A stretch of DNA of 64,000 bases from contig NIVC01000814.1 of the NCBI GenBank assembly GCA_002269645.1, forward strand, positions 372,001-436,000, read 5' to 3'. The stretch is from Macrostomum lignano (lineage: Eukaryota). The stretch's first letter is position 1; each line of letters opens with the position of its first letter. Below the pieces are notes generated by a model, which saw nothing but the letters and a program-made list of their open reading frames with translations, was not told the DNA's origin and made no database searches. The position numbers and the translations under genes were made by a program. Shown here piece by piece: positions 6,201-54,223 of this stretch.

Positions 6201-7893
6201 ATGTGCGCAATTGTCACGGTCAGCGTCCGCAGGATGTGGCACCGCCAGCACAGTCTGGCGAACAGTCAGTTGGCGAAGGCGGAGGCGGCCTGGCTGCTTT
6301 GGTACTGTCTGGCTGTGGTCAGCAACGGTTAATGTGTCTGGCTGCCGAGGCTGTTGCTAAGTGAGTTGGTTTTACCAATCTACCTGTAATTTATCAACAT
6401 TAGAATTCTGTGAGTGCGTGCTAAAATATCAAATATAAGATAAAGATACACAAATTATCTCTCTCCAGAATCGGGGTTGCTAAGAAACCAACCGCTTCAC
6501 AGATTACACAGAATCAACCCGAAGGAGGGTTAAAATGCTAGTCTGTATACTAAAATAAAAGGTACCCAGTGGTCCAGCGCGGCGCTATCATATGCCAGCA
6601 GCCCAGGCTCGATTCCAATTGCAGTCGCATTGATTTGGTGGCTAAATTGGAATCTCGGCTTGGCTCTGTTCGTGCAATTAACGCCCAGCTTGAGGGCCAA
6701 CCCCCAAAGGCACAGTGAAGTGTACATGCCTAACGATAAATAGAGTTAGGGCCGCTGTACACTCCTGTGTGAGTGTGTGCCTGCGCGTGTATCTGCCAAT
6801 TACGACTCAAGTAGGACGGGAAACCTCGTTTCTTACAAAATTTTAGAAGGCGGGCTTTCCCGAAAAAATACACTACGGAGATAGGAAGTTTTCAGCACAA
6901 AAATTGCTATTGCTTTTGATAGGAGGCAGATCCAGCGTTCACCTTTTGATATGCTGTGCTATATATGTGCTATATATGTATGTTAATTTTTTATTCTACC
7001 TACATTTCCTGTACCTAAAATTCGTTAAAATGCATGACACAGCTCGAATATTTGGTTTTATGAATCTATTTTATCATCTCTGCTACAAGTATTTGTTACA
7101 CAGTCAGCTAAGAGTGATAAAATAGACTCATAAAACCAAAGAGCCGAGCTGTGCCATTTCAATGGTTTTTAGGCACAAGACACGTGCAAATGTAAGAAGA
7201 ATAAAAAATTAACATCGAATCCTAATTTTCTGAACGAAAAGCTTCATGAATATCGATAGAGCAATAAGAAAGGCACACCATATCAAAAGATGAACACTGG
7301 GTCTGCCTCCTATTAAAAGCAATAGCAATTTTTGTGCTGAAAGAATGAAAACTTCCTATCTCCGTAGTGTATTTTTTCGGGAAAGCCGGCCTTCTAAATT
7401 TTTCTAAGAAACGAGGCTTCCCGTCCTTTTACTTGAGTCGTCCTTGCTGTCTGCTCAGGGGAGTCGGCGGAATGGGCAGTGAAAATAGAACTGTAGTAGC
7501 CTTCAATTCCTATTTTGAACCAACCTGCGCAGGCACTGGCTGCCAATAATCTGCGCCAGAAGTCACAAACCGGAGACAGACTGCTGCCAAGCAGCCAATA
7601 CAGCTGGCGATTTGGCAGAAGCAGCCGCCGCAACTGTTGCTACGGGGTTTCATCTGCCGCCCGGCCTGTTGCAGTTTGTCGGACTGCACAGCCAGCATCG
7701 GCAGGCCTGCCGGCGCTGCCGACCAGCCGCTGTCGGCATCGGGCCAGGCCAGCCCAATCGCTGCCTGCGCTCCCTCACTCTGGCCGCCGCTTCGGTTGCT
7801 AAGGGCGACTCGTTGTCTTCCTCTAAGTCTTTGTCTGCTCAGTCTATCAGACTAGCCGACGTTGACATGCGATCGGATGGTCGGTTGCAATGA
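228..7893 (+). CDS. FEM1B: FEM1B-like ankyrin/TPR CRL2 E3 substrate receptor, 3' part (5' exons lie outside the window). Exons 228-672, 5051-5304, 6124-6360, 7533-7893
   Basis: Peptides EGLMIRERVLG, PIVYRGAVCAD, LWLHAL, KDLLRLSQVLSQM, LLHMSCD, KLLLHCGAD, GDTPLHLIV, DFLTL, GAHTD, LMCLAAEAV and LPPGLLQFVGLH follow FEM1B in order. GT/AG junction phases are consistent (0, 2, 2). Confidence 0.9.
757..4872. repeat. 35-bp minisatellite, ~110 copies, with longer variant units at the 5' end; fills a FEM1B intron
   Basis: Unit ATGACCCACTATAATGGTCATCAAGATAGGTAGCT. Confidence 0.97.
5325..6020. repeat. 30-bp minisatellite (FEM1B intron)
   Basis: Unit AATATCGTAGCTGAGGCTGTAGTAGACTTT. Confidence 0.95.
6561..6770 (+). 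mobile_element. Possible degenerate tRNA-derived SINE in FEM1B intron 3
   Basis: CCCAGTGGTCCAGCGC (A-box-like) and GGCTCGATTCC (B-box-like) occur at tRNA-like spacing. The 3' boundary is uncertain. Confidence 0.35.
6802..7441. repeat. ~640-bp imperfect fold-back palindrome (arms ~6802-7080 and ~7110-7441)
   Basis: ACGACTCAAGTAGGACGGG... pairs with ...CCCGTCCTTTTACTTGAGTCGT. Complementarity continues inward to ATTTTATCATCTCT / AGAGTGATAAAAT around a ~30-nt loop. Confidence 0.85.
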
Positions 7894-12484: not shown

Positions 12485-12837
12485 AGACCGCTCTCCTAAC
12501 TGCTCTCTCATTGGCTGAGCTAGATTGGGCCTGCCCCTCTGGACTGAGTTTCGTCCTTCTAACTTTGACCTCTCTCCTAACTGCTCTCTCATTGGCTGAG
12601 CTAGATTGGGCCTGCCCCTCTGGACTGAGTTTCGTCCTTCTAACTTTGACCTCTCTCCTAACTGCTCTCTCATTGGCTGAGCTAGATTGGGCCTGCCCCT
12701 CTGGACTGAGTTTCGTCCTTCTAACTTTGACCTCTCTCCTAACTGCTCTCTCATTGGCTGAGCTAGATTGGGCCTGCCTGAGTTTCGTCCGTGTAACATC
12801 GACCTGTCTCTTTACTGCTCTCTTATTGGCTGAGCTC
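12485..12837. repeat. 81-bp tandem repeat with CCAAT-box core
   Basis: ATTGGCTGAG occurs at ~12510, 12591, 12672, 12753 and 12825. Confidence 0.93.
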
Positions 12838-13279: not shown

Positions 13280-14092
13280 TCATCTGAGGAAGGCAACCTC
13301 CAAGATGCTGACCTCAATATCTTTGGACTCCTTAAGATGATGGTTGTACGATCTGTTCAGATTGTATCGCAGATTAGCAACCTGACTGACGCTATAGTCG
13401 CGACCTTCCACCATAGCGCTAGCAACGTCATCGTTGCTCATCAGCTTCCGAGCGCAGGCCTGCCTCGCGCGATGCATCACAAATGGCATTGTGGTAGTTT
13501 TGTGCAACGAGAACACTAACCCACAAGAAGCGGCAATACCGGCTTCTAAAAAAGCAATATCGATTCCTTTCGATGATGTTGACTGTCCTGCTTTCTTGTT
13601 CCTCCTATTACTATTGCTTTTGTGACTGAGTTTCGCGTCGCTGTAAGTGCCAAACGGTGGATTGGTCACAACCACATCGAACTGTCTTTGATGAACTAGT
13701 CCAGCCGACAGGCGAGTCACATCCGCCTGCAGCAGATCCCAGTTCGCTGATACGTCATTATCATCATCATCGTTGCCAGGTGAAAACAGCTCCATCAAGT
13801 TGGAGCGGCAGAGGTCAAGCGAGTCGCTGTCAATATCGACTCCGCACACGTAACCGGAGCCCAAAGCCAGACAGCCGGTCATGAGGGCGCCGGGACCGCA
13901 GCCCAGATCCAATACGGACTGCTCGGCAGTGAAGCAATTCCAGCGCATCTTGGCATCGTACAGCCAGCTGGCAGCCACCTCGCCAGGCGTGGCGTATTGC
14001 TCCCAACGCGATTGAGGATTAGCAAATGTTGGCACCTGTTGCAGCAGCGATTCTAACTGTTTCCGATTGCGAACCAGAGGCTGTACAGGGGC
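13280..14092 (-). CDS. METTL5: METTL5, 18S rRNA N6-adenosine methyltransferase. One coding exon starting at a splice acceptor, no in-frame genomic ATG at the N-terminus
   Basis: LESLLQQV..EQYATP, VLDLGCGPG (SAM motif I), VVTNPPFGT (NPPF motif), GIDIAFL and FSLHKTTT are the METTL5 signatures. Confidence 0.92.
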   Translation of the reverse strand, partial: APVQPLVRNRKQLESLLQQVPTFANPQSRWEQYATPGEVAASWLYDAKMRWNCFTAEQSVLDLGCGPGALMTGCLALGSGYVCGVDIDSDSLDLCRSNLMELFSPGNDDDDNDVSANWDLLQADVTRLSAGLVHQRQFDVVVTNPPFGTYSDAKLSHKSNSNRRNKKAGQSTSSKGIDIAFLEAGIAASCGLVFSLHKTTTMPFVMHRARQACARKLMSNDDVASAMVEGRDYSVSQVANLRYNLNRSYNHHLKESKDIEVSILEVAFLR

Positions 14093-14149
14093 CTGGAAGC
14101 GAGCCGACAAGTTTTAAGATAATCTAGGTTAATTAGAAACATTATTGCT

Positions 14150-14800
14150 GAGACGAGATGCGAGACTGGGGAGTGATTTAGTGAGAGGAGACCTGAGGCT
14201 GAGACTGATATGAGAGACTTGGCGAGAAGAGATCTGAAACTGAGATGAGAGATTTAGTGAGAGAACATCTGAAACTCAAATGTGAGATTTGGTGAGAAGA
14301 GATTTGAGAATGAGATGTGAGACTTGGCGAGAAGAGATCTGAAACTGAGACGAGAGATTTGGTGAGAGGAGATCTGAGATTTAGATGAGAGGAGATGTGA
14401 GAATTGGTGAGAAGAGATCTGAAACTGACATGAGAGACCTGGCGAGAAGAGATCTGAGATTGAGATGAGAGATTTAGTGAGATGAGATCTGAGACGTGAG
14501 ACTTGGCGAGAAGAGATCTGAAACTCAGATGACAGATTTGATGAGAAGAGATCTGAAACTAAGATAAGAGATTTGGTGAGAATAGATAAGAGACTGAGAT
14601 GAGAGATTTGGTGAGAAGAGATCTGAAACTGAGATGTGAGAATTGGTGAGAAGAGATCTGAAACTGAGATGAGAGACTTGGCGAGAAGAGATCTGAGATT
14701 GAGATGAGATCTGAGACGTGAGACTTGGCGAGAAGAGATCTGAAACTGAGATAAGAGATTTGGTGAGAAGAGATCTGAAAGTGAGAAGATATCTGGCAAG
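14150..14800. repeat. Degenerate GA-rich minisatellite upstream of METTL5
   Basis: Recurring GGTGAGAAGAGATCTGAAACTGAGAT. Confidence 0.85.
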
Positions 14801-15389: not shown

Positions 15390-16208
15390 GGAAGATGACA
15401 TGTTTCAAGAAATTGTAGGGAGCCACATCTGTAAAAGATTATTTGTGCTAAAAATCGAAGAAAAGCACATCTGTGGAAGAGAATATATTCTAAGAGAGAG
15501 CGTACAAAGCCACATTTTCGGAAAGAGGACATGTTCTAAGAAATCGTAGGGAGCCACATCTTTAAGACGACACGCGCTAAAAATCGTAGGGAGCCACATC
15601 TGTAAGAGGACACGCGCTAAAAATCGTAGGGAGCCACATCTGTAAGAGGACACGCGCTAAGAAATCGTAGGGAGCCACATCTGTAAGAGGACACGCGCTA
15701 AAAATCGTAGGGAGCCACATCTGTAAGAGGACACGCGCTAAAAATCGTAGGGAGCCACATCTTTAAGAGGACACGCGCTAAGAAATCGTAGGGAGCCACA
15801 TCTGTAAGAGGACACGCGCTAAAAATCGTAGGGAGCCACATCTGTAAGAGGACACGCGCTAAGAAATCGTAGGGAGCCACATCTGTAAGAGGACACGCGC
15901 TAAGAAATCGTAGGGAGCCACATCTGTAAGAGGACACGCGCTAAGAAATCGTAGGGAGCCACATCTGTAAGAGGACACGCGCTAAAAATCGTAGGGAGTC
16001 ACATCTGTAAGAGGACACGCGCTAAGAAATCGTAGGGAGCCACATCTGTAAGAGGACACGCGCTAAAAATCGTAGGGAGCCACATCTGTAAGAGGACACG
16101 CGCTAAGAAATCGTAGGGAGCCACATCTGTAAGAGGACACGCGCTAAAAATCGTAGGGAGCCACATCTGTAAGAGGACACGCGCTAAGAAATCGTAGGGA
16201 GCCACATT
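15390..16208. repeat. 40/41-bp minisatellite
   Basis: Unit AAATCGTAGGGAGCCACATCTGTAAGAGGACACGCGCTAA(G). Confidence 0.95.
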
Positions 16209-16348: not shown

Positions 16349-16822
16349 TTAGTAGCGTCGATAGGACTTGCTAGCGGATCCACTGGAATTGTCTCCGTTA
16401 TTCCTATCGAAATGACGACTGTCTCGTTTAACACCGGCGGCAATATTTCTCGACGGTTCGTTGCGTTGATAATAATCGCCGTCTCGACTGTCGCCTCTGT
16501 GGTTGCCATGGTAACGCTGGCGCTGCTGATGCCGCCGACCCTCGCTAGTCCAGTCGTACTGCCGCCGGGGATTCCGGTACCAGCGGGTCACCACGGGGGG
16601 TGTTGGCGATTTCTCGCGATTCCAACAGGCCTGAAAGTCCGGATCCTGCTCGGTGAACCGGTGCTGGAATTTCATCTCTAATTGGAGGACGCTGAGACCG
16701 CCGGATGGCGGAGCTGCGGCTGCTGCGGTTGACTGCTCAACAGCTGTCTTAGAAGACTCTGCTGCCTCTGCTGTTGCCTGAGTGGAACTTTTCTCAGCTG
16801 CAGCTTCTTCTGGCATTTTCAT
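16349..16822 (-). CDS. RAMAC: RNMT-activating mini protein (RAM/FAM103A1)-like, single exon
   Basis: LEMKFQHRFTEQDPDFQ...SPTPPVVTRW resembles the RAM core FEEMFASRFTENDKEYQ...ESPPIVEEW. It is followed by an R/N/G/D-rich low-complexity tail as in RAM. Confidence 0.75.
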   Translation of the reverse strand: MKMPEEAAAEKSSTQATAEAAESSKTAVEQSTAAAAAPPSGGLSVLQLEMKFQHRFTEQDPDFQACWNREKSPTPPVVTRWYRNPRRQYDWTSEGRRHQQRQRYHGNHRGDSRDGDYYQRNEPSRNIAAGVKRDSRHFDRNNGDNSSGSASKSYRRY

Positions 16823-17244
16823 CAATAAATGAGTTGATTGCTTTATTAGGCCAGCCAAGTTGGTCTAGCGCTTCAAGTTAAGCAGAGCTGGCCGCGGTTA
16901 GTGCGCAGCTTAACTATCGAAAATTTGACTGCCTAAACTAACGCTTAACCTAAACTCTTATTAAATAAAACAAAACCTATCCTGTATCTAAACTATATCA
17001 TAAAACTAAACTAAACCGAATCTTAAACCCTAATCTAAACCTTTAATCTGGGGGTCGGCCAATTTCGGCCCACGAAGCCTCTCTATCCCGCCCTCGGGTC
17101 CTTTGAAACTTCACAATAGCAATCCGACCCGCTCAAGGTTTGTGTCTCTTCTCAGCTCTCTTCTCTCGTCTCTTTTTTCTTTTCTCCGTTCTCTTCTCCC
17201 TGCACAGCCTGTGATAGCATGTCAGCGGAATGGGCCACCAATAG

Positions 17245-18375
17245 ACAAGGGCGCCCACCTACGAGACAGGGGCACCCACCTAGGAGACAGGGGCGCCCAC
17301 CTAGGAGACAGGGGCACCCACCTAGGAGACAGGGGCGCCCACCTAGGAGACAGGGGCGCCCACCTAGGAGACAGGGGCGCCCACTAAGAGACAGGGGCAA
17401 CCACCAAAGAAGACAGGGGCGCCCACCTAGGAGACAGGGGCGCCCACCTAGGAGACAGGGGCGCCCACCTAGGAGACAGGGGCGCCCACCTAGGAGACAG
17501 GGGCGCCCACCTAGGAGACAGGGGCACCCACTTAGGAGACAGGGGCGCCCACTAAGAGACAGGGGCAACCACCAAAGAAGACAGGGGCGCCCACCTAGGA
17601 GACAGGGGCACCCACCTAGGACAGGGGCACCCACTTAGGAGACAGGGGCGCCCACTAAGAGACAGGGGCACCCACCCAGGAGACAGGGGCGCCCACCTAG
17701 GAGACAGGGGCGCCCACCTAGGAGACAGGGGCACCCACCCAGGAGACAGGAGCGCCCACCCAGGAGACAGGAGCGCCCACCCAGGAGACAGGAGCGCCCA
17801 CCAAGGAGACAGGGGCGCCCACTAAGAGACAGGGGCACCCACCAAAGAGACAGGGGCAACCACCAAAGAAGACAGGGGCGCCCACCTAGGAGACAGGGGC
17901 ACCCACCTAGGAGACAGGGGCGCCCACCTATAGGAGACTGGGGCGCCCACCTAGGAGACAGGGGTACCCACCTAGGAGACAGGGGCGCCCACCTATAGGA
18001 GACAGGGGCGCCCACCTAGGAGACAGGGGCACCCACCAAGGAGACAGGGGCACCCACCAAGGAGACAGGGGCGCCCACTAAGAGACAGGGGCACCCACCA
18101 AAGAGACAGGGGCACCCACCAAGGAGACAGGGGCGCCCACTAAGAGACAGGGGCACCCACCAAGGAGACAGGGGCGCCCACTAAGAGACAGGGGCACCCA
18201 CCAAAGAGACAGGGGCGCCCACTAAGAGACAGGGGCACCCACCAAAGAGACAGGGGCGCCCACTAAGAGACAGGGGCGCCCACCAAGAAACAGAGAAGAA
18301 ACAGAGGCACCCACCAAAAGATAGGGGCGTCCATTTAAAAGACATGGGCGCCCACCTAGGAGACAGGGGCACCCA
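17245..18375. repeat. 21-bp GC-rich minisatellite
   Basis: Unit GAGACAGGGGCGCCCACCTAG. Confidence 0.95.
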
Positions 18376-19064
18376 CAATGACTTTCCCACTCTCGTCAGA
18401 CCGTATACAGCACATTCTCATTATGTTTCGGCAATGAAAGCGTAAAGACAGTTAGTTTATAAAATAAAATTATGTTCAACTCTGTTGAAAAATTATTTAC
18501 GCACGTAGCTATACTTTCAGTTTTTGCAGCGCGCAGGTAGCCAAAAACTGATTGAAATATATAGGGGAGTTGCCTGTGTAGATGATGCACACACACAACT
18601 AGATGGCAGTAATAATAATATTAATAATAATAATAAAAATTATACAGAAATTCAATTTATCCAACGGCACAGGAACACCTACAAGAAAAGCACATGTCAA
18701 TACCAATAAGAGAAAATTACTGGATAGATGAAAAAATCACAAAACTGTAGTAGTAAGTTAGGCATATAAATAGCAAAATACAGAGATAAATATTATAGCA
18801 TCTACTTAGAATTTCTGCATGCACTTATTAATTTAAGAATCGAAATGAAGTGTGTGCATTTAAACACATTGAAAGCAGTTTAAGTTGAAAAAAAGCATTA
18901 TATTTTTCTCAAAATTTATAAAAAATTATAAGCAGACTGTTTTCTGCTATTTGGAAACATAAAAAGTCACAACCAAAAATTATTTTTGTCTAGTTTTTGA
19001 TGTTTTGTATATTAAAACAGAAGTTGATGTACTATTAAATTACTTTATTTAAGGACTCGGATAG

Positions 19065-19074
19065 TCTGTCTTTG

Positions 19075-19131
<57 letters not shown>

Positions 19132-19158
19132 TTCTGTCTGTCTGTCTGTCTGTCTACC

Positions 19159-19224
<66 letters not shown>

Positions 19225-19226
19225 CC

Positions 19227-19259
<33 letters not shown>

Positions 19260-19262
19260 TAA

Positions 19263-19316
<54 letters not shown>

Positions 19317-19378
19317 CCTGTCTGTCTGTCTGTCTGTCTGTCTGTCTGCCTGTCTGTCTGTCTGTCTGTCTGTCTACC

Positions 19379-19420
<42 letters not shown>

Positions 19421-19422
19421 CC

Positions 19423-19468
<46 letters not shown>

Positions 19469-19500
19469 CCTGTCTGTCTGTCTGTCTGTCTGTCTGTCTC
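19065..19500. repeat. (TGTC)n microsatellite
   Basis: Near-pure tetranucleotide run with occasional TACC interruptions. Confidence 0.97.
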
Positions 19501-19709: not shown

Positions 19710-20963
19710 TCACTGGCGCAACTGAGCCAGTCGCTTGTTGAGCGCGTCCTCGCGCTTCCGCTCCTCGGACTGGGCTGACGCGGCCCCCGGGGTGGCTCCG
19801 GCGGCCGGTTCGAGCCCGGCCAATTGGTCGGCCACCTCCAGCCCGTTCTCGTCGGCCACCTGTTGAATCAGGGAGCTCACCTGATCCTCCGGGGCGCTTA
19901 GCGTCATCGCATTGCCCATAGACGATTCTACAGTCTGCGTGCGAACGTCTAAATCTTCGAATGTTTTCTCGAATTTGCCCATCACCTTTTCGACCTCCTC
20001 CAGGTTCATGCTGGACATGGCTCGCTCTAGGTCTTTGGTTACCTAGATTAAAGGAACAGCAACGGTTGCTATGGTCTTAAATTATGCTACATACTGGTAA
20101 TCAAAATACTAATTTGATATAAAATTCGCTTACTTAAGTTATTTACCCTACATATCGGCCATCTTACGTGGCAACTTAAAACACTAACTAAGTGTAGAAG
20201 ATGGAATAGAAGCTACAGTAAGATTATATAATTGTTCCCTACAAAATAATTTACGCTACATTTCGGGCACAGATACAGATAAACTACTGTTAGATCAAAC
20301 ATAAGTTATATAATATAATTTCAATTAAAAATTGCCCTACAAAGCATTTTTCGATACATATCGGCTTTTTTAACAGTATAATTAACTGTTAAATACTGTT
20401 AAATACATTTAACAGTATTCTGTTAAAATAAGGATAAATTTGTTTGTTTTCCTTTACTCTTATTAAGATAGAAATGTATAAACATCAATCGTACCTGTCC
20501 AATATTTTTAGTAACGCCCTTCATAGTTTGGGCAGTTTGCACTCTAGCAGCTACAGCGTCAATGCGGGCAGCAAACCGGAGATAATTAAGCGATTCGTTC
20601 TTCTTTCTGATGGCATTCTCGGCATAGATTCGAGCGCCTTCGACGTTGCGCTGCTGTAACGCTTTCTTAACTTTGGCCTGTTTAAAATAGGGAATTATTT
20701 CACAATTTTTGGTTAATAGCATATACTACTGTCAATATTTGCACCGCAAGTAAGTACGATAATTAGCGTTTAATGGTATCCTTCGTTAATAGCGGCAAAA
20801 ATGAAAAAATATATGCTGGTCTAGTGAAGAAAATAAAAATCCTCACCTGTTCTTTAGCCTGCTCCTTCTCAGCTTTGGCAGCGAGTCGAGACAACTGTTT
20901 ATTAGTCATGCGAAGATTAAACAATGTTTCTGTTAGATCGGGTTCCTTTCCAAACAGAGGCAT
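19710..20963 (-). CDS. CHMP1A: CHMP1 (ESCRT-III, CHMP1A-like). Exons 20963-20847, 20677-20495, 20042-19710
   Basis: [39 protein letters not shown]|[15 protein letters not shown] and C-terminal [13 protein letters not shown]. Both introns are phase 0 with GT/AG ends. Confidence 0.92.
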
Positions 20964-21699
20964 GATTGCGTGTCCGATAGAGTTTGCACTGAGCATGAAT
21001 AAAATAAAGAAATTGTTTTTATCGATACTACTTACTATGATCGCTTAAGTCAGTAGTATAAAACTAACTGAAAAAGAAAGAAATTTAGAAAAAAATACAA
21101 AAAAACAAGAAGCTACGGGTTAATTCTATTCTGTTGAAACTGAACTTTTAATTTTAAACTTGTTTTATATAAAAATAGCAGCATGGTGATTTTTGATAAA
21201 ATGTTTACAGGGTGATCTTTTCAGTTTTAGCAGGACAAAAATAGACTGAAAATACGAGTGTACATACACTGACACGATCTATCAGATTATTATATCAAAT
21301 TAGGCAAATCTGCAAATAAAATGTTTATAGAGAAAAAAATATTCTTTTTAAAATGTGCTTATTAAAGACAGTGTTCAACTTTGAGTAGGCGATAAAGAAA
21401 ATGCATAATAAAATTGTTTATCCAGACCGTATCATACTGGGCACAATAGGAATTTTGGCAATGCTTCTTACCGCTTATTGGTTGCAAACTATGATCGAAT
21501 TATAAAATCAAGTTATGCAGACGAATAACAGGACTGCTGGGATGACTGAACAGAAAATACAAACTAAAAGATAACTTTAATTAGATCAAACAGACCTAAA
21601 TACTAGGATTTATTGTAAGAGAAATTTGCAAATCGAAAAAATAAACAGATAAAATTATTAGATTTACAGATTTTGACTTTCAGGGTGACAAAGACTACA

Positions 21700-26849: not shown

Positions 26850-29021
26850 TTATTGAACTTTCTTATCCTTAACAAGGCCATTTCCGCCGTTATCGCCAGC
26901 GGTTGCTGCGGCCGAGTCTATCCAATGCTCCATGGCGCATTTCTTTGGAAACCAGCCCCTAGAAGCGGAAGCGTCTCTCGCAGACTGAGACTGCTCATCA
27001 GCTAGTAATAGCTGACCGTAGAGCCATTCGCCGTGAGCTCGAGTTACAATCAGTCGCTGACCAGGCGACAATGACAATCGTTTCTCTTCGATCCAGATTG
27101 AGCACGGCTGGCAACAGGCGGTTCTCAAGCCGAAGCTAATAGGAAATCTGGTACCAGTGTAAGCTCGAATAACGCTCGCTAATACAGCCGTACTGGCTTT
27201 ATGCGCCTTTTGCAGCACCTGCTCCTTTGTTAAATCGTATTTGCCGCAATCGGGTGCCAACGGCCAATCGTCCAGGCCGTTGCCAACTGGTCGGCCGGAC
27301 CAGTTTATCACCTGCCGGGTAGGAGGGAGATGGCATCTATTCTCATAGGCGATTGTGCCTAACAGGTACATTTACATATAACTGGGGTCTAACAGGGTAA
27401 CAGGTGTCTAACAGATACATTGGTATCTAACACGTGTCTAACAGATACATTGGTATCTAACAGGTGTCTAACAGGTACATTGGTATCTAACAGGTGTCTA
27501 ACAGGTACATTGGTATCTGACAGGTGTCTAATAGATACATTGGTATCTGACAGGTGTCTAACAGATACATTGGTATCTGACAGGTGTCTAACAGATACAT
27601 TGGTATCTAAAAGGTGTCTAACAGATACATTGGTATCCAACAGGTGTCTAGCAACTAACACACTTTGAGCATAACACGCGTCTGGTTTGTGTGTGTGTGT
27701 GTTATTTTGCGTGTTAACGTTAACAATCCAGAAAAGTCCAACATGCAACTTAATTACCTGCTTAAAGTTTCTCATCCTACCCAAATCGTAGGGATATTGA
27801 AACTTCGGCGGCTGTCCAGCCTCATCAATGGACAAGTGAGCAGTCATGGAGTCGTGCCGGCATTCTAATCGATAATCGGCTTTATCGCAGATCCAAAACT
27901 CGATACCAGTTCGATTGCGTAATATCGATTTTAGCTGAACAAAGAACAGAGCGCCAACTGCTATGGTGGTGCCTAAAGCGAGGCCCAGACAGAAGAATGC
28001 TAACAATACCTCCCACAGGTTCATCATAGCGTAGTCCTCGGTCGGGAACTCAGAGTCCTGATGATAGAACGGATAGAACAGAGTATAATAGACGCAGTAG
28101 GACACAATGACAGCCGAGTGCAGGCAGCCTAACGGGGCGAACAATAGAAAATAGGTGAACTGAGCGTGATTCCGGTGACCGACGCAGGCGTTGATCCATG
28201 GACAGTGATGATCCATCTTGGTGACGCAGCGGCCGCACCTGCTGCAGTGATGCGATCTGCAAATTTTATAATTACAGGTATTTTAGTGTCGCTTTTTTAT
28301 CAGCATAGGTTGCAATTGTTATTATTTTATATATTCTCTCGAGATGAATTATATTGCAATAATCTCGTACATTATATTTTAATCCTGATCATTTCGATCA
28401 TTTATAATTATTATCGTCTGGCTGGTCCCATATACTCGACTCTTACACCATTGATCATCAACATTATCATTGGCAACACCATCACTATCACTGTCATTAC
28501 CAGTATCATCATCATCGAAATCATCATTATCATCACACTTATCATCATTAAAATCATCACCCCACCATCTTCATCATCATCACCACCACCATCATCACAA
28601 TCATAGTATTAATAATAATTTTCATAACTATAATACTCATGCCTTAAAATAATTTCAAAAGAAAAGTACTCAGCTTGTAAGTTAGTCAATAAACCAACGA
28701 AGGCCACTCACCTAGGAGCTTTGTATCCCTTACAGATAGAGCACCATTGCAACAAAGATTTCAGTTGTTGATCGTCTGTCAAATCGATCGGTCTCCAGCC
28801 AATAGGCACAAAACCGGGACCCCAGAACATGGCCTTCAAATAGGTGGACATCACCAGGTAGTATTCAAGCGCGTATACGGCTACGTGCAGCAAATTGCTG
28901 TGCGATTTCAATGGCGGCCACCATATTAGCAGCAGTCGACTAGTATAGATAGCTATATAGAATATGATAAATAGGGCGATTAAGGGGCCCCAGTGCAGGA
29001 CCCGGCGAAGTCTCTGCTTAG
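26850..29021 (-). CDS. ZDHHC6: ZDHHC6 palmitoyltransferase with C-terminal SH3-like domain. Exons ~29021/29013-28712, 28256-27758, 27311-26850; start codon not found
   Basis: LHWGPLIAL, AMFWGPGFVPIGWRP, CKGYKAPR|SHHC..C..CVTKMDHHCPW, FLLFAPLGCLH, YPYDLG, WLYG...RGWFPKKC. Junction phases 2 and 0 are consistent. Confidence 0.92.
27385..27655. repeat. 30-bp minisatellite (ZDHHC6 intron)
   Basis: Unit CTAACAGATACATTGGTATCTRACAGGTGT. Confidence 0.93.
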
Positions 29022-30706: not shown

Positions 30707-32572
30707 TCACAGAGCACTAGCACTATTAGAAGCCGATGGCGTCTTGGCACTGCTCGGATCATTCTGATTGGCTGAAGAATCCACAACTGCCGCCTCATTC
30801 TGCTGATCACTTAAGACAGCCTGTTGATCTGATGACTCAACATCGAAACGATTGTTCTCGCGATAATCATCCGGAAGCGATGTATGAAAGTATAATTTTA
30901 ATTCTCTTTTAATAGCCGCGCAAAGGTAAGATGTTAGTAGGATTAGAGGAACAATGTAAAGCAAAGCTGGTTGGCCGCTGCCTGTAGCAAAGAGAACGCC
31001 GGCACAGGCGCCAAGTCCAAGCAGGTAGCCAATCATTGACGAGACAAAATAAGGATAGAAACGATTTTTCCAAGCCAAATCGAAGAACAAATTCAGACTG
31101 ATTAGGATAGCCGGCATTATGACATCGCCGAGACCGAGAATTGAGTAGGGCAGCAGGCAGGTGGATACAGACTCAGCCGGAGGATAGGGCATGACCTTAA
31201 ACACAATGGGAATAATCTCCCCGGATAAACCGGCTGTTCCCAAGGCTACGCGTTCCATAAAAGAGCCGCCACGTTCGACGTAATAATCCATAACGGTGTC
31301 ACGCCTAACTCTATTCAAGGTTGAAGCCTCCGTTGACGGCGGGTTCGTTGGACTCGGGCCGCTGCCGCTGCCGCCGCCGCCGCCAGAGAATAGCGGCGTA
31401 ATAAAGACAAAGAAAACGTCGTACACTAGGAAGCATATCAGGATAATTGTAGCAATCTTGATGCGCAGAGCCATAGCCAAGGATTCAATGACGCGCAACA
31501 CGAGTACAACGTTAAGAATATTAGTCAAGATGAAGGCCCAATGAGCATTGCGGAATACAAACCAGATTACGGCAACTGCCAGACAAAATGGATAAACGAT
31601 AAACTCTAAATAAGTGTAAGATATTTTTCCGCAACATTTGCCAAGATCGAATTCTACAGTAGTTGCTAGCCAAGGCCTTGGACCAGTCTCTAGTTTGGCT
31701 TTCACGCAGGCCAGATAGATTCTATTGATATAATAGACGAGACTGCTAGACACGGAATAGCCGTAGAGCACTAGCATTAACCAAACGAAATAGTCGTAAG
31801 CAAAGTTCAATAGCAACAGTATAGTGATTGGAATGGCAAGCAGAATAATAGTGAATATCGCTGTGTGCCACCAAGGCGCGCTAGCATTTACGTCTGGCTC
31901 ATGTTCGGAGTTCGTATTCACATTAGAGGCCAACCTTGAGCGTGTTAACAAGTATTCTTTCAATGCTGTAGCGGCTGTAATGCAAGACAGCACCATAGTG
32001 ACCAATGCGATAGCATACAAAATGAGAAACATGTACTGCTTAGAACCGGAATTGTCGTCGTCTGGCCTATAGAGAGTCGCTTTGACATTCGAATCCGACA
32101 TGAACTGCGACTTAAAGGATTGGTAAGCTACCTTCGATATAACGACAGTTTGAAAGCTCTTAGGTAGAAGGTGCGACTCGGCCGTTAAATAAGTCGGATA
32201 CCTTTCTGACGATACCACAATAAGACCAATGGCACCTTGAGCGAATGCGTTAACAGCCTTATCTGTATAGGTGCAACCACCCAAAGCCAGTATGACAATG
32301 CGATTAGCATAACTGGCATTGTTTCTATTGCATCCGTTGTTTGGATAAGCATCGATAATTGGCTTGCTATCCGACGAGTGGAAAGTGTTGCTCAGATTAA
32401 AGGTTAACGATGGATCGCCGTAGGCGCAATAGTTCTCATAATGAGAATCCGTGGTGCCAACGCGAAGATAAGCAATACCATTGATATTTAAATTCAAGGC
32501 TCTCGCTGTTCCGACTTCGAGTAGGAGAACCAGCAGAACTACCAGCGACAACCAACTTGCTCGTTGGTTCAT
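30707..32572 (-). CDS. SPPL2: Signal peptide peptidase-like 2 (SPPL2A/B-type) GxGD intramembrane aspartyl protease, intronless, 621 aa
   Basis: Signal peptide, PA domain (GGCTYTDKA..A...GA.GLIV), multiple TM helices, YD motif (LVYDVFFVFITP), LGLGD and QPALLYIVP. Confidence 0.9.
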   Translation of the reverse strand: MNQRASWLSLVVLLVLLLEVGTARALNLNINGIAYLRVGTTDSHYENYCAYGDPSLTFNLSNTFHSSDSKPIIDAYPNNGCNRNNASYANRIVILALGGCTYTDKAVNAFAQGAIGLIVVSSERYPTYLTAESHLLPKSFQTVVISKVAYQSFKSQFMSDSNVKATLYRPDDDNSGSKQYMFLILYAIALVTMVLSCITAATALKEYLLTRSRLASNVNTNSEHEPDVNASAPWWHTAIFTIILLAIPITILLLLNFAYDYFVWLMLVLYGYSVSSSLVYYINRIYLACVKAKLETGPRPWLATTVEFDLGKCCGKISYTYLEFIVYPFCLAVAVIWFVFRNAHWAFILTNILNVVLVLRVIESLAMALRIKIATIILICFLVYDVFFVFITPLFSGGGGGSGSGPSPTNPPSTEASTLNRVRRDTVMDYYVERGGSFMERVALGTAGLSGEIIPIVFKVMPYPPAESVSTCLLPYSILGLGDVIMPAILISLNLFFDLAWKNRFYPYFVSSMIGYLLGLGACAGVLFATGSGQPALLYIVPLILLTSYLCAAIKRELKLYFHTSLPDDYRENNRFDVESSDQQAVLSDQQNEAAVVDSSANQNDPSSAKTPSASNSASAL

Positions 32573-33374
32573 TGCTTTCTCTTTGAAGAAAATTGATCGT
32601 TCAAACAAATATTTATATAACTGCTGATCAACTCGTGAAAAATGGTATCATGAAACATTCAAAATATTGTGTCAGTCAGAGTTTACGATTTTAAATTTGG
32701 ATACAAAGCTAGCTAAACAATAACAATTTTAAAAAAACACGAAGACATAAGGCGTACTTTAACTCATAAATTCGCTTCAAATTTAATTTATTAACTAAAC
32801 AAATACAATGCCAGCGAAAAAACAAACAAATATTTACAATTTGTAACAATTAAAAAATCAATCTAATAATTATAACTATTATTACCAAATATATAGAGAC
32901 ACCATAGAAAATTTGCACAACATTCAATAAGTAAGAAGATACAATGAGAGTAACTATTAAACAGACTGATTGATATCTTACAGTGATTTTTTTAATCCAG
33001 TAGTAATAGGACAATATAAAGTATTGTACAATAATAACTAGTGTGTATAGTAGGGTAAAATATGTGGACAATCTGATTGAAAAATCGAAGGAATTTAGTC
33101 GATCATATAACACGATGAACAAGTATTACTGTGTAATTATGCATCTGGGTTGCATATGCATCATTATAATGAGTACAAAAACCAGTAAATTACCAAGCAA
33201 AACCAAGGATTACTAGAATTAGTATAAATGTAGCAACAAAATTGATCGATAGCAACGTATAATTTTTGTTACTAACACAACACCGATTCGTTAAGTTGAA
33301 TGCTACCCGTTTTCGTGCTTGTAAGAATTCTTCAGAATGTACTATAAAGCGATGTTATGAGCGATTCTGTGCTG

Positions 33375-52834: not shown

Positions 52835-54223
52835 TCATTCATCGGTTGGTAGACTTGTCTTCTCAACGTAGTCACCATGAGACATGATGCACTTCTCCCA
52901 TCGGTCTCGCATCTTGTCGATGGCGTTTGCATACACATTTCTTGGGATCTGGTACAGCAAGATCCTCCTGACCTCACTCTCCAAGTGATCACAACTGTTG
53001 TGAACTCGCCCTTGAAGCTGTCGCTTTAACTCAGGAAACAAGGCGAAGTCCGCAGGTGCCAGGTCAGGAGAATATGGAGGGTGAGGAAGCAACTCAAAGT
53101 TCAGTTGGTCAATTGCTTGCATGGTCTTTGCAGCAGTATGCGGCCTCGCATTGTCGTGGTGGAGGATATGGGGTCTTTCTTTCCCCCATCTTTTGTTGCA
53201 GATGCATACATGCGCAACAGTCGGCCGAGTCGGCCGATCCGGCCGACCGATTTGGCGGCCAATCAAGGAAGTCGCAAAAATGCCCACCCAAAAAATAACC
53301 TGAAGAGTAGTACTAAGTAGCTGATGAGGCATTTTAGCTTAATAAAACAGTCATAGTTACTCCTGCCGTTTACCCAAAGTTGCGTTAATTTTGCTTTCGG
53401 GTTTTTTTATATGTAAGTCGCATTTTTGGCCAAAAACTACGTCGCATTTTTGTTAAAACTAAGTCGCACGGCTGACCGAATTTTGGAGGTTGCACATGTA
53501 TGTGCAGATGTCTGACTTCAGTTTTGTCAGGGAGGTCACATACCAATCAGCATTGATGGTCGAGTTTGGCTCCAGGAACTCGATGGTCAGTGGGCCATTG
53601 CAATCAAAAAAGAGAGTCAGCATGACTTTGTTGCTGTGCCGGTCTCGGCGAGCTTTTGTTGGTGGATCAGATCCCCTGACGGTCCAAACCATTGACTCCT
53701 GCTTTGTTGGAGGGTCGAAGTATGGCACCCATGTCTCGTCGCCAGTTACGATCAGCTCTCGAAAGGCTTCCCATCCTCCATGTTGATTGACCAGCTCCAG
53801 GTTGTTCACACATTTCTGCTGGCGATCCAGCTTCATGACCTCAGTGAGCAATCGTGGTACCCAACGGGCACTCAGCTTGACGTGATTCATCTTCTGCAGG
53901 CACTCGTGAACTGTGGACTTCGGGCAATCCAATCGATCGGCCATTTCGCGAATGCTCTGGCGGCAGTCTTCATCAATCAAGTCGAGAATGCGATCCGTCA
54001 GGCTGCTGCTGTCGCGAATTGCAGGGCATCCGGACCTTGGCATGTTGCTCACGTCAGTTCTTCTAGCCTGAAACTCGCCCACCCACCTGCTTACTGTCAT
54101 CTTGCTGACAGCATGGTCACCATGAGCTATGCAAAGTTGCCTGTGGATGTCAGCCGATTTGGTTCCGGAGCTCCAAAGTGTAAAGATGGCATGTCGCTGC
54201 CCAGTCTTTGAATGCACATCCAT
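52835..54223 (-). pseudogene. Mariner transposase (360 aa if restored) interrupted by a 298-bp insertion
   Basis: HTH, WVPRLL, IVTGDETW, ILHHDNARPH and PHPPYSPDLAPADF, with 34 residues between D2 and D3. Segments 54223-53503 and 53196-52835 total 1083 nt in frame. Confidence 0.92.
53205..53502. mobile_element. Non-autonomous hAT-like MITE inside the mariner transposase
   Basis: 14-bp TIRs CATACATGCGCAAC / GTTGCACATGTATG (1 mismatch). Perfect 8-bp TSD TGCAGATG at 53197-53204 and 53503-53510. Confidence 0.88.

Follow-up and report, generated by a model that had tools for sequence, protein, structure and literature searches.

The window analysed here is a stretch of 64,000 nucleotides from scaffold NIVC01000814.1 of the Macrostomum lignano assembly GCA_002269645.1 (Mlig_3_7). 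Its reverse strand carries a METTL5 gene whose coding body (13283-14092, 270 codons) is a single exon that opens with the codon GCC, has no initiator codon and is followed by a stop codon at 13282-13280. Upstream on the same strand lies an intact RAM/RAMAC-like ORF of 155 aa (16349-16816; Pfam RAM score 39.3 bits, cut-off 25), which is absent from the called genes of the window copy. RAM/RAMAC is a family of cap-methyltransferase activators. Further upstream are a CHMP1/Snf7 gene and an EPSTI1-like gene, both discussed below. Other features of the window include a DHHC palmitoyltransferase exon that runs into a repeat (27389-28216, reverse strand; Pfam), a signal-peptide-peptidase-like gene with a PA domain (30707-32608, reverse strand; Pfam) and a fragment of a Mos1/mariner-type transposase with HTH_48 and a partial DDE domain (53459-54223, reverse strand; Pfam). 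For the signal-peptide-peptidase-like ORF (30710-32572), no database record was found under one guessed start.

Translation from GCC 14092 opens APVQPLVRNRKQLESLLQQV..., and the 270-aa product shares 99-100% identity with three GenBank M. lignano proteins and is identical to the 5'-partial protein P0034. Judged from its sequence, it is a member of the METTL5 family and a predicted 18S rRNA m6A methyltransferase. Pfam returned generic class-I methyltransferase matches only, and the best solved-structure matches are both human METTL5 (6H2U, E=1.4e-26; 9OHL, E=1.7e-26), aligning in three collinear segments. Among named homologues, insect METTL5 proteins come closest: 94% of the query aligns with Anopheles METTL5 at 36% identity. 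The SAM-binding DLGCGPG and catalytic NPPFG motifs are present, and D62-G66 and N144-G148 (NPPFGT) are invariant in an 11-sequence alignment, as are nine N-terminal positions: L13, L17, F23, P26, E31, Q32, Y33, T35 and A40. Human METTL5 is the 18S rRNA m6A1832 methyltransferase and works with TRMT112. The flatworm protein shares with it (6H2U, 9OHL) the Rossmann methyltransferase core, DLGCGxG, NPPFG and an N-terminal LxxLExxLQxV...EQYxT. Unlike the human protein, it has two low-complexity insertions (NDDDDND and approximately 22 residues following NPPFGT) and 7 extra residues at its N-terminus, and its gene lacks an initiator codon.

Read in the direction of transcription, the METTL5 frame is TAA (14116-14114) AAC TTG TCG GCT CGC TTC CAG / GCC (14092) CCT GTA CAG / CCT (14080) CTG GTT CGC AAT CGG AAA CAG TTA GAA. 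The in-frame TAA (14114-14116, reverse strand) is 8 codons 5' of GCC and closes the frame within the presumptive outron. The first in-frame ATG is codon 49 (13946-13948, reverse strand), 3' of the EQY motif. All nine of the invariant N-terminal residues precede it, so an internal start at Met49 would remove them and delete conserved structure. The nearest upstream ATG (14140-14142, reverse strand) is out of frame, and the ORF that it opens overlaps the METTL5 start and stops after 31 codons. A first-pass annotation of this DNA had noticed a TAA just upstream of the conserved N-terminus, a first in-frame ATG about 50 codons in and past EQY, and an out-of-frame ATG at 14142, and these observations all hold. 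It had also stated that a small intron could not rescue ATG 14142, and inspection agrees: the sole GT (AT/GT at 14140) joins neither of the two acceptors described below in frame. Inspection likewise found no AG/G acceptor at third codon position for a small intron from this ATG. The METTL5 of the window has no genomic in-frame AUG able to give the full-length conserved protein.

Comparison with homologues indicates how much protein could be missing. Nine of the ten homologues start with M-K two residues ahead of the conserved K-x-L-E (M-K-L-K-x-L-E), and the tenth (Anopheles funestus) carries three further N-terminal residues. The flatworm frame already runs 7 residues beyond the homologues' Met, so METTL5 here does not lack a long N-terminal exon.

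M. lignano has a single 35-nt spliced leader (SL), CGGTCTCTTACTGCGAAGACTCAATTTATTGCATG, whose 3' end is ATG; approximately 30% of its genes are trans-spliced and approximately 15% are in operons (PMC8629364). This published sequence bears out, for M. lignano, the earlier statement that platyhelminth SLs end in AUG. No SL RNA gene was found in the 64-kb window at up to 3 mismatches. The motif enriched at M. lignano trans-splice acceptors is [T/C]TNCAG (PMC8629364). Two AG-ending hexamers flank the start of the METTL5 coding body, both on codon boundaries and therefore in phase 0, as first reported: TTCCAG (14093-14098, reverse strand) directly 5' of GCC 14092, and GTACAG (14081-14086, reverse strand) before CCT 14080. 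TTCCAG matches the enriched motif exactly, whereas GTACAG is a poor fit and does not match it. Since [T/C]TNCAG has a frequency of approximately 1/512 and there are approximately 17 codon boundaries between TAA and the conserved K, a chance occurrence at any such boundary is expected approximately 3% of the time. Neither an annotated CDS start nor an SL-tail footprint (see below) falls at GTACAG/CCT 14080, and this site is probably an unused or minor acceptor.

The existing annotation places the METTL5 start at the same position. Gene models for Mlig_3_7 were made by cutting transcripts at peaks of SL-trimmed reads, followed by ORF calling with TransDecoder (PMC5730564), and the GenBank CDSs of all three METTL5 copies are 5'-partial and begin at the same GCC. 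An annotated 5' end is weak evidence for a trans-splice site when taken alone, and we do not rely on it alone because CHMP1 is also annotated as 'partial' right after an ATG that is probably real.

METTL5 is also the second gene of its annotated unit. The named copies are Mlig015112g2 and Mlig024045g2, and g1 of each unit is the upstream RAM-like gene (Mlig015112g1, Mlig024045g1). The RAM-METTL5 spacer is 2,256 nt on the same strand, of which 1,282 nt are tandem repeats, leaving approximately 974 nt. The repeats are an outron array at 14199-14795 (reverse strand; approximately 35-nt period, approximately 16 copies, TC-rich on the gene strand) and a second array at 15523-16207 (reverse strand; 40/81-nt period). 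Ustyantsev & Berezikov 2021 (PMC8629364) define operons by a same-strand neighbour, a trans-spliced downstream gene and a repeat-adjusted spacer of <1 kb. By these criteria the RAM-METTL5 pair would qualify as an operon, with an adjusted spacer of approximately 974 nt that is borderline, i.e., just under 1 kb.

Several further observations concern this gene cluster. RAM and METTL5, both RNA-methylation factors, are in one transcription unit. In copy L004, the RAM-like ORF (7276-7503) has lost 1 nt from a C-run, and its annotated product has 75 aa only. Every spacer of the cluster contains a tandem array (12486-12778, 14199-14795, 15523-16207, 17243-18284 and 19064-19499), with periods of 81, approximately 35, 40/81, 21 and 4 (GTCT) nt, respectively. 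The 35-nt array 5' of METTL5 is rich in TCTCAG/TTTCAG strings that resemble trans-splice acceptors.

The two other METTL5 copies in the assembly differ from the window at exactly this junction. In a three-way alignment, the window reads GCT-TTCCAG/GCC and both other copies read GCT-TGCATG/GCC, their ATG-bearing string being GCTCGCTGCATGGCCCC; elsewhere, the three hardly differ over 300 nt of outron and the first 150 nt of CDS. The three clustered substitutions (T>G, C>A and A>T) spell the SL's last six bases; with them the AG is lost and the genome gains an in-frame ATG. Across a 5.3-kb three-way alignment with 74 substitution columns, there are only 2 clusters with at least 3 substitutions in 6 columns, and one of them sits at -5..-2 of the METTL5 junction. 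Of the three, the two other copies are closest to one another, at 98.9% identity. Differences between the copies affect 7 codons synonymously and 3 non-synonymously, which indicates that METTL5 is under constraint, and the CDS is invariant over its first 278 nt.

In our view, the TGCATG of the two other copies very likely arose in assembly, as SL bases that were written in by RNA-seq polishing. Mlig_3_7 was polished with RNA-seq reads, and STAR was run end-to-end in the transcriptome step (PMC5730564). Reads overhanging the junction by a few SL bases would be forced onto the outron and could out-vote the DNA reads. If TGCATG is such an artefact, then all METTL5 copies are without a genomic ATG. 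The artefact would also be indirect evidence for SL joining, as it suggests that the RNA-seq reads abounded in ...GCATG immediately before GCCCCTG. A spliceosomal acceptor requires AG, so a site marked by SL-derived bases must truly read ...AG. Nothing in the sequence explains why polishing would have spared the window copy.

SL-like tails are not a general property of the window: TTGCATG occurs 10 times (16.4 expected), and fuzzy 11-14-nt SL tails are not enriched across it. The footprint signal thus belongs to gene starts and is not a global statistic. At the RAM-like gene (16820-16834, reverse strand; 5259-5273 of L003), the 15 nt before AAAATGCC are ACTCATTTATTGATG in two copies, and the third copy reads ...TTATTCATG (...TTCATG) before the ORF. 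These tails are the SL's last 17 nt with a differing 1-nt deletion each, and shuffling gives an expectation of 0.03 per window. Here too the SL AUG would be in frame with the ORF (M-K-M-P-E-E). Apart from the tails described here, no SL tail of at least 6 nt in the window precedes an ORF of >87 codons. At 53110-53123 (forward strand), CAATTGCTTGCATG agrees with the SL's last 14 nt at 12 positions and is followed by a 60-codon ORF (MVFAAVCGLALSWW...) adjoining a mariner-like element; the match may mark a further gene start with an SL footprint, or be due to chance. At the EPSTI1-like gene, the bases ahead of the annotated start (22728) are CTGTG, neither AG nor an SL tail, and this case is uninformative.

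The CHMP1/Snf7 gene offers a parallel to METTL5. Just 5' of CTCAGTGC (20994-21004, reverse strand; 1089-1099 of L003), the three copies read TTTTATTCATG, TTTTTTGCATG and TTTTTTTCATG, so that the hexamers before it in Mlig_3_7 are TTCATG, TGCATG and TTCATG. UniRef A0A1I8JDK6, an apparently independent M. lignano model, encodes ILFQ/LSANS across this site, i.e., TTYCA[A/G]. Its accession style suggests that it comes from the earlier ML2 assembly (Wasik et al. 2015). Read as CAG, its Q codon would make the site a TTYCAG acceptor and would imply two of the changes seen at METTL5 (C>A and A>T); read as CAA, an equally valid Q codon, it would leave no acceptor there. The CHMP1 tail looks like SL bases polished into the reference. 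Trans-splicing at this site would set the SL AUG in frame, 11 codons ahead of the genomic Met.

The CHMP1 annotation also illustrates why boundaries need care. The GenBank CHMP1 CDS (PAA76552.1 / PAA65824.1; 209 aa, rebuilt protein confirmed by exact look-up) is labelled 'partial' and starts at PLFGK, directly after an ATG (20960-20963, reverse strand; 1130-1133 of L003). A0A1I8JDK6 also encodes this Met, so the ATG is probably real. The gene is then probably not truly partial and its 5' boundary has been mis-set, perhaps by a false SL call beside CATG. Some annotated 'trans-splice' boundaries in Mlig_3_7 may likewise be false calls beside CATG.

Taking these lines of evidence together, the start codon of METTL5 is likely to be supplied by the SL AUG through trans-splicing at 14092, with METTL5 as gene 2 of a RAM-like/METTL5 unit. 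The pre-mRNA of the two genes would be resolved by SL trans-splicing at TTCCAG/GCC (14093-14098 / 14092), which would discard the repeat-rich outron and, with it, the in-frame TAA and the out-of-frame ATG. With AUG at the 3' end of the 35-nt SL and a phase-0 acceptor, the mature mRNA would read ...UUAUUGC-AUG-GCC-CCU..., with the SL AUG as initiator. An AUG joined at 14092 is in frame (AUG/GCC CCT...) and meets no stop across 270 codons. At the junction, ...TTATTGCATG would be joined to GCCCCTGTACAG, giving the string TTATTGCATGGCCCCTGTACAG in RNA, whereas genomic DNA would read GCTCGCTTCCAGGCCCC, and the product would be M-APVQPLVRNRKQLESLLQQV..., a full-length METTL5.

The first-pass annotation had gone further, proposing that SL trans-splicing yields this Met-initiated protein and that production of the enzyme strictly depends on it. 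The first part is supported by the motif at 14092, the 5'-partial CDSs at GCC, the g2 position and the SL tail in two paralogues, from which we infer that the SL is joined at 14092 in vivo and that its AUG is the codon used by ribosomes. The second part goes beyond this evidence: strict dependence is a reasonable reading for the window copy, and it would apply organism-wide only if the ATG of the other copies is an artefact. A 90% protein cluster holds the three GenBank proteins only, with no Logan or transcriptome-derived member and no SL-joined transcript, and the exact 271-aa M-APVQ... product of one paralogous copy was not found in the protein collection. In the literature we found no paper tying METTL5 to trans-splicing, and neither the literature nor supplementary tables gave a trans-splice status for Mlig015112, Mlig024045 or METTL5.

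How far METTL5 depends on the SL turns on whether TGCATG in the other copies is real DNA. If it is, its ATG could simply be the normal start, METTL5 would be independent of trans-splicing, and the window copy would have lost its start by clustered mutation, leaving it start-less and weakly expressed or non-functional. Two of the three assembly copies do carry ATG GCC CCT in frame, a single event suffices since these two are mutually closest, and CHMP1 shows that annotation boundaries beside CATG can be false. However, this would require three changes that together replaced a start codon with a perfect [T/C]TNCAG acceptor, in the same place and in phase 0; read in reverse, these changes spell the SL's last bases exactly. 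The same CAG-vs-ATG discrepancy recurs at CHMP1 between Mlig_3_7 and A0A1I8JDK6 (with Q read as CAG), and RNA-seq polishing of Mlig_3_7 is documented. The window copy, with its intact frame and its 7 synonymous versus 3 non-synonymous differences, does not look like a decaying gene. An upstream-started transcript would, moreover, carry the out-of-frame ATG 14142, whose ORF overlaps the start. We therefore regard a normal genomic start as improbable. Slightly less probable still is that TGCATG is real because a reverse-transcribed, trans-spliced METTL5 mRNA converted the gene's 5' edge and so planted the SL's last bases, AUG included, in the genome. Such a conversion would have freed those copies from dependence on trans-splicing, and the three copies would form a before-and-after series of an SL start codon turning genomic.

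Two further explanations accept that the window lacks a genomic ATG at GCC and find the start elsewhere, and we give each of them very little weight. Acceptor 14092 might be used in cis, with an unannotated upstream exon providing a phase-0 ATG. Cis- and trans-splicing share many acceptors in parasitic flatworms (PMC12582326), and the spacer contains 41 ATGs. We searched the whole 2,256-nt spacer for a phase-0 mini-exon with the species' donor consensus, GT[A/G]AG, and found none: 0 of 27 combinations of ATG, open frame and codon-boundary GT have such a donor, and most lie inside tandem repeats. Nor does the genome-guided annotation show an exon of this kind in any copy, so the case that had been named as a refutation of SL-supplied initiation, a cis-spliced phase-0 ATG exon, appears in neither the sequence nor the annotation. 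A frame already 7 residues past the homologues' Met and the SL-tail footprint at the 14092 junction also argue against it. The other explanation places the start inside the exon without the SL AUG, either at a near-cognate codon (TTG 14110 or CTG 14077) or at Met49, which would give a truncated protein. Near-cognate initiation is known in eukaryotes and on SL-bearing mRNAs (PMC9851317), and the frame is open from TTG 14110. TTG 14110 is in the outron, however, and would be removed by trans-splicing, after which a scanning ribosome would meet the in-frame SL AUG first; Met49 would cost the nine invariant N-terminal positions.

With the SL AUG as its start, METTL5 is a conserved housekeeping enzyme (18S rRNA m6A writer) with a frame that would be completed only by the SL, making it a clean but ordinary example. 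It leaves the view of trans-splicing unchanged and could serve as a convenient reporter in a transgenic-capable flatworm. The reference artefact may matter more than the METTL5 mechanism itself. Mlig_3_7 seems to carry SL-derived ...CATG in place of ...CAG at trans-splice sites through RNA-seq polishing. Such bases hide acceptors and create false genomic start codons, so they can mislead both gene models and SL-AUG surveys in M. lignano. The SL-AUG mechanism is known (Cheng et al. 2006); what is new is the presence of the SL's last six bases at the METTL5 junction in the two other copies.

METTL5 is probably a new case of an already documented flatworm mechanism, the SL-supplied AUG. As cited in later papers (PMC9851317, PMC12582326, PMC5832876), Cheng et al. 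2006 (J Biol Chem 281:733) reported that the terminal AUG of flatworm SLs serves as an initiator; according to PMC9851317, 28% of trans-spliced S. mansoni mRNAs had this AUG in frame, and >40 cDNAs needed it. The Macrostomum cliftonense/hystrix genome paper also names the SL's final ATG a translation start codon (PMC10468722). METTL5 resembles the mRNAs of Cheng et al. 2006 in having an SL that ends in AUG, a phase-matched acceptor and a conserved ORF without its own AUG, for which the SL would supply the Met. It differs in that its host is a free-living macrostomid, not a parasite, and in the gene concerned; SL-AUG translation was demonstrated experimentally by Cheng et al. 2006, whereas for M. 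lignano METTL5 we infer it.

Judged from gene order and spacing, METTL5 also resembles SL-resolved operon genes (e.g., those of M. lignano, PMC8629364, and SL2 genes of C. elegans): it is gene 2, it follows a repeat-inflated spacer after gene 1 and it would be processed by SL addition. Unlike C. elegans, M. lignano has a single SL and thus no SL1/SL2 specialisation, and operon membership normally carries no implication that the SL supplies a start codon. As would hold for METTL5, the start codon of slORFs (nematodes, trypanosomes and Oikopleura; slORFfinder, PMC9851317) comes from the trans-spliced leader. slORFs, however, mostly use a near-cognate NUG inside the SL and often make new or alternative ORFs, whereas in METTL5 a canonical AUG would complete an ancient conserved ORF.
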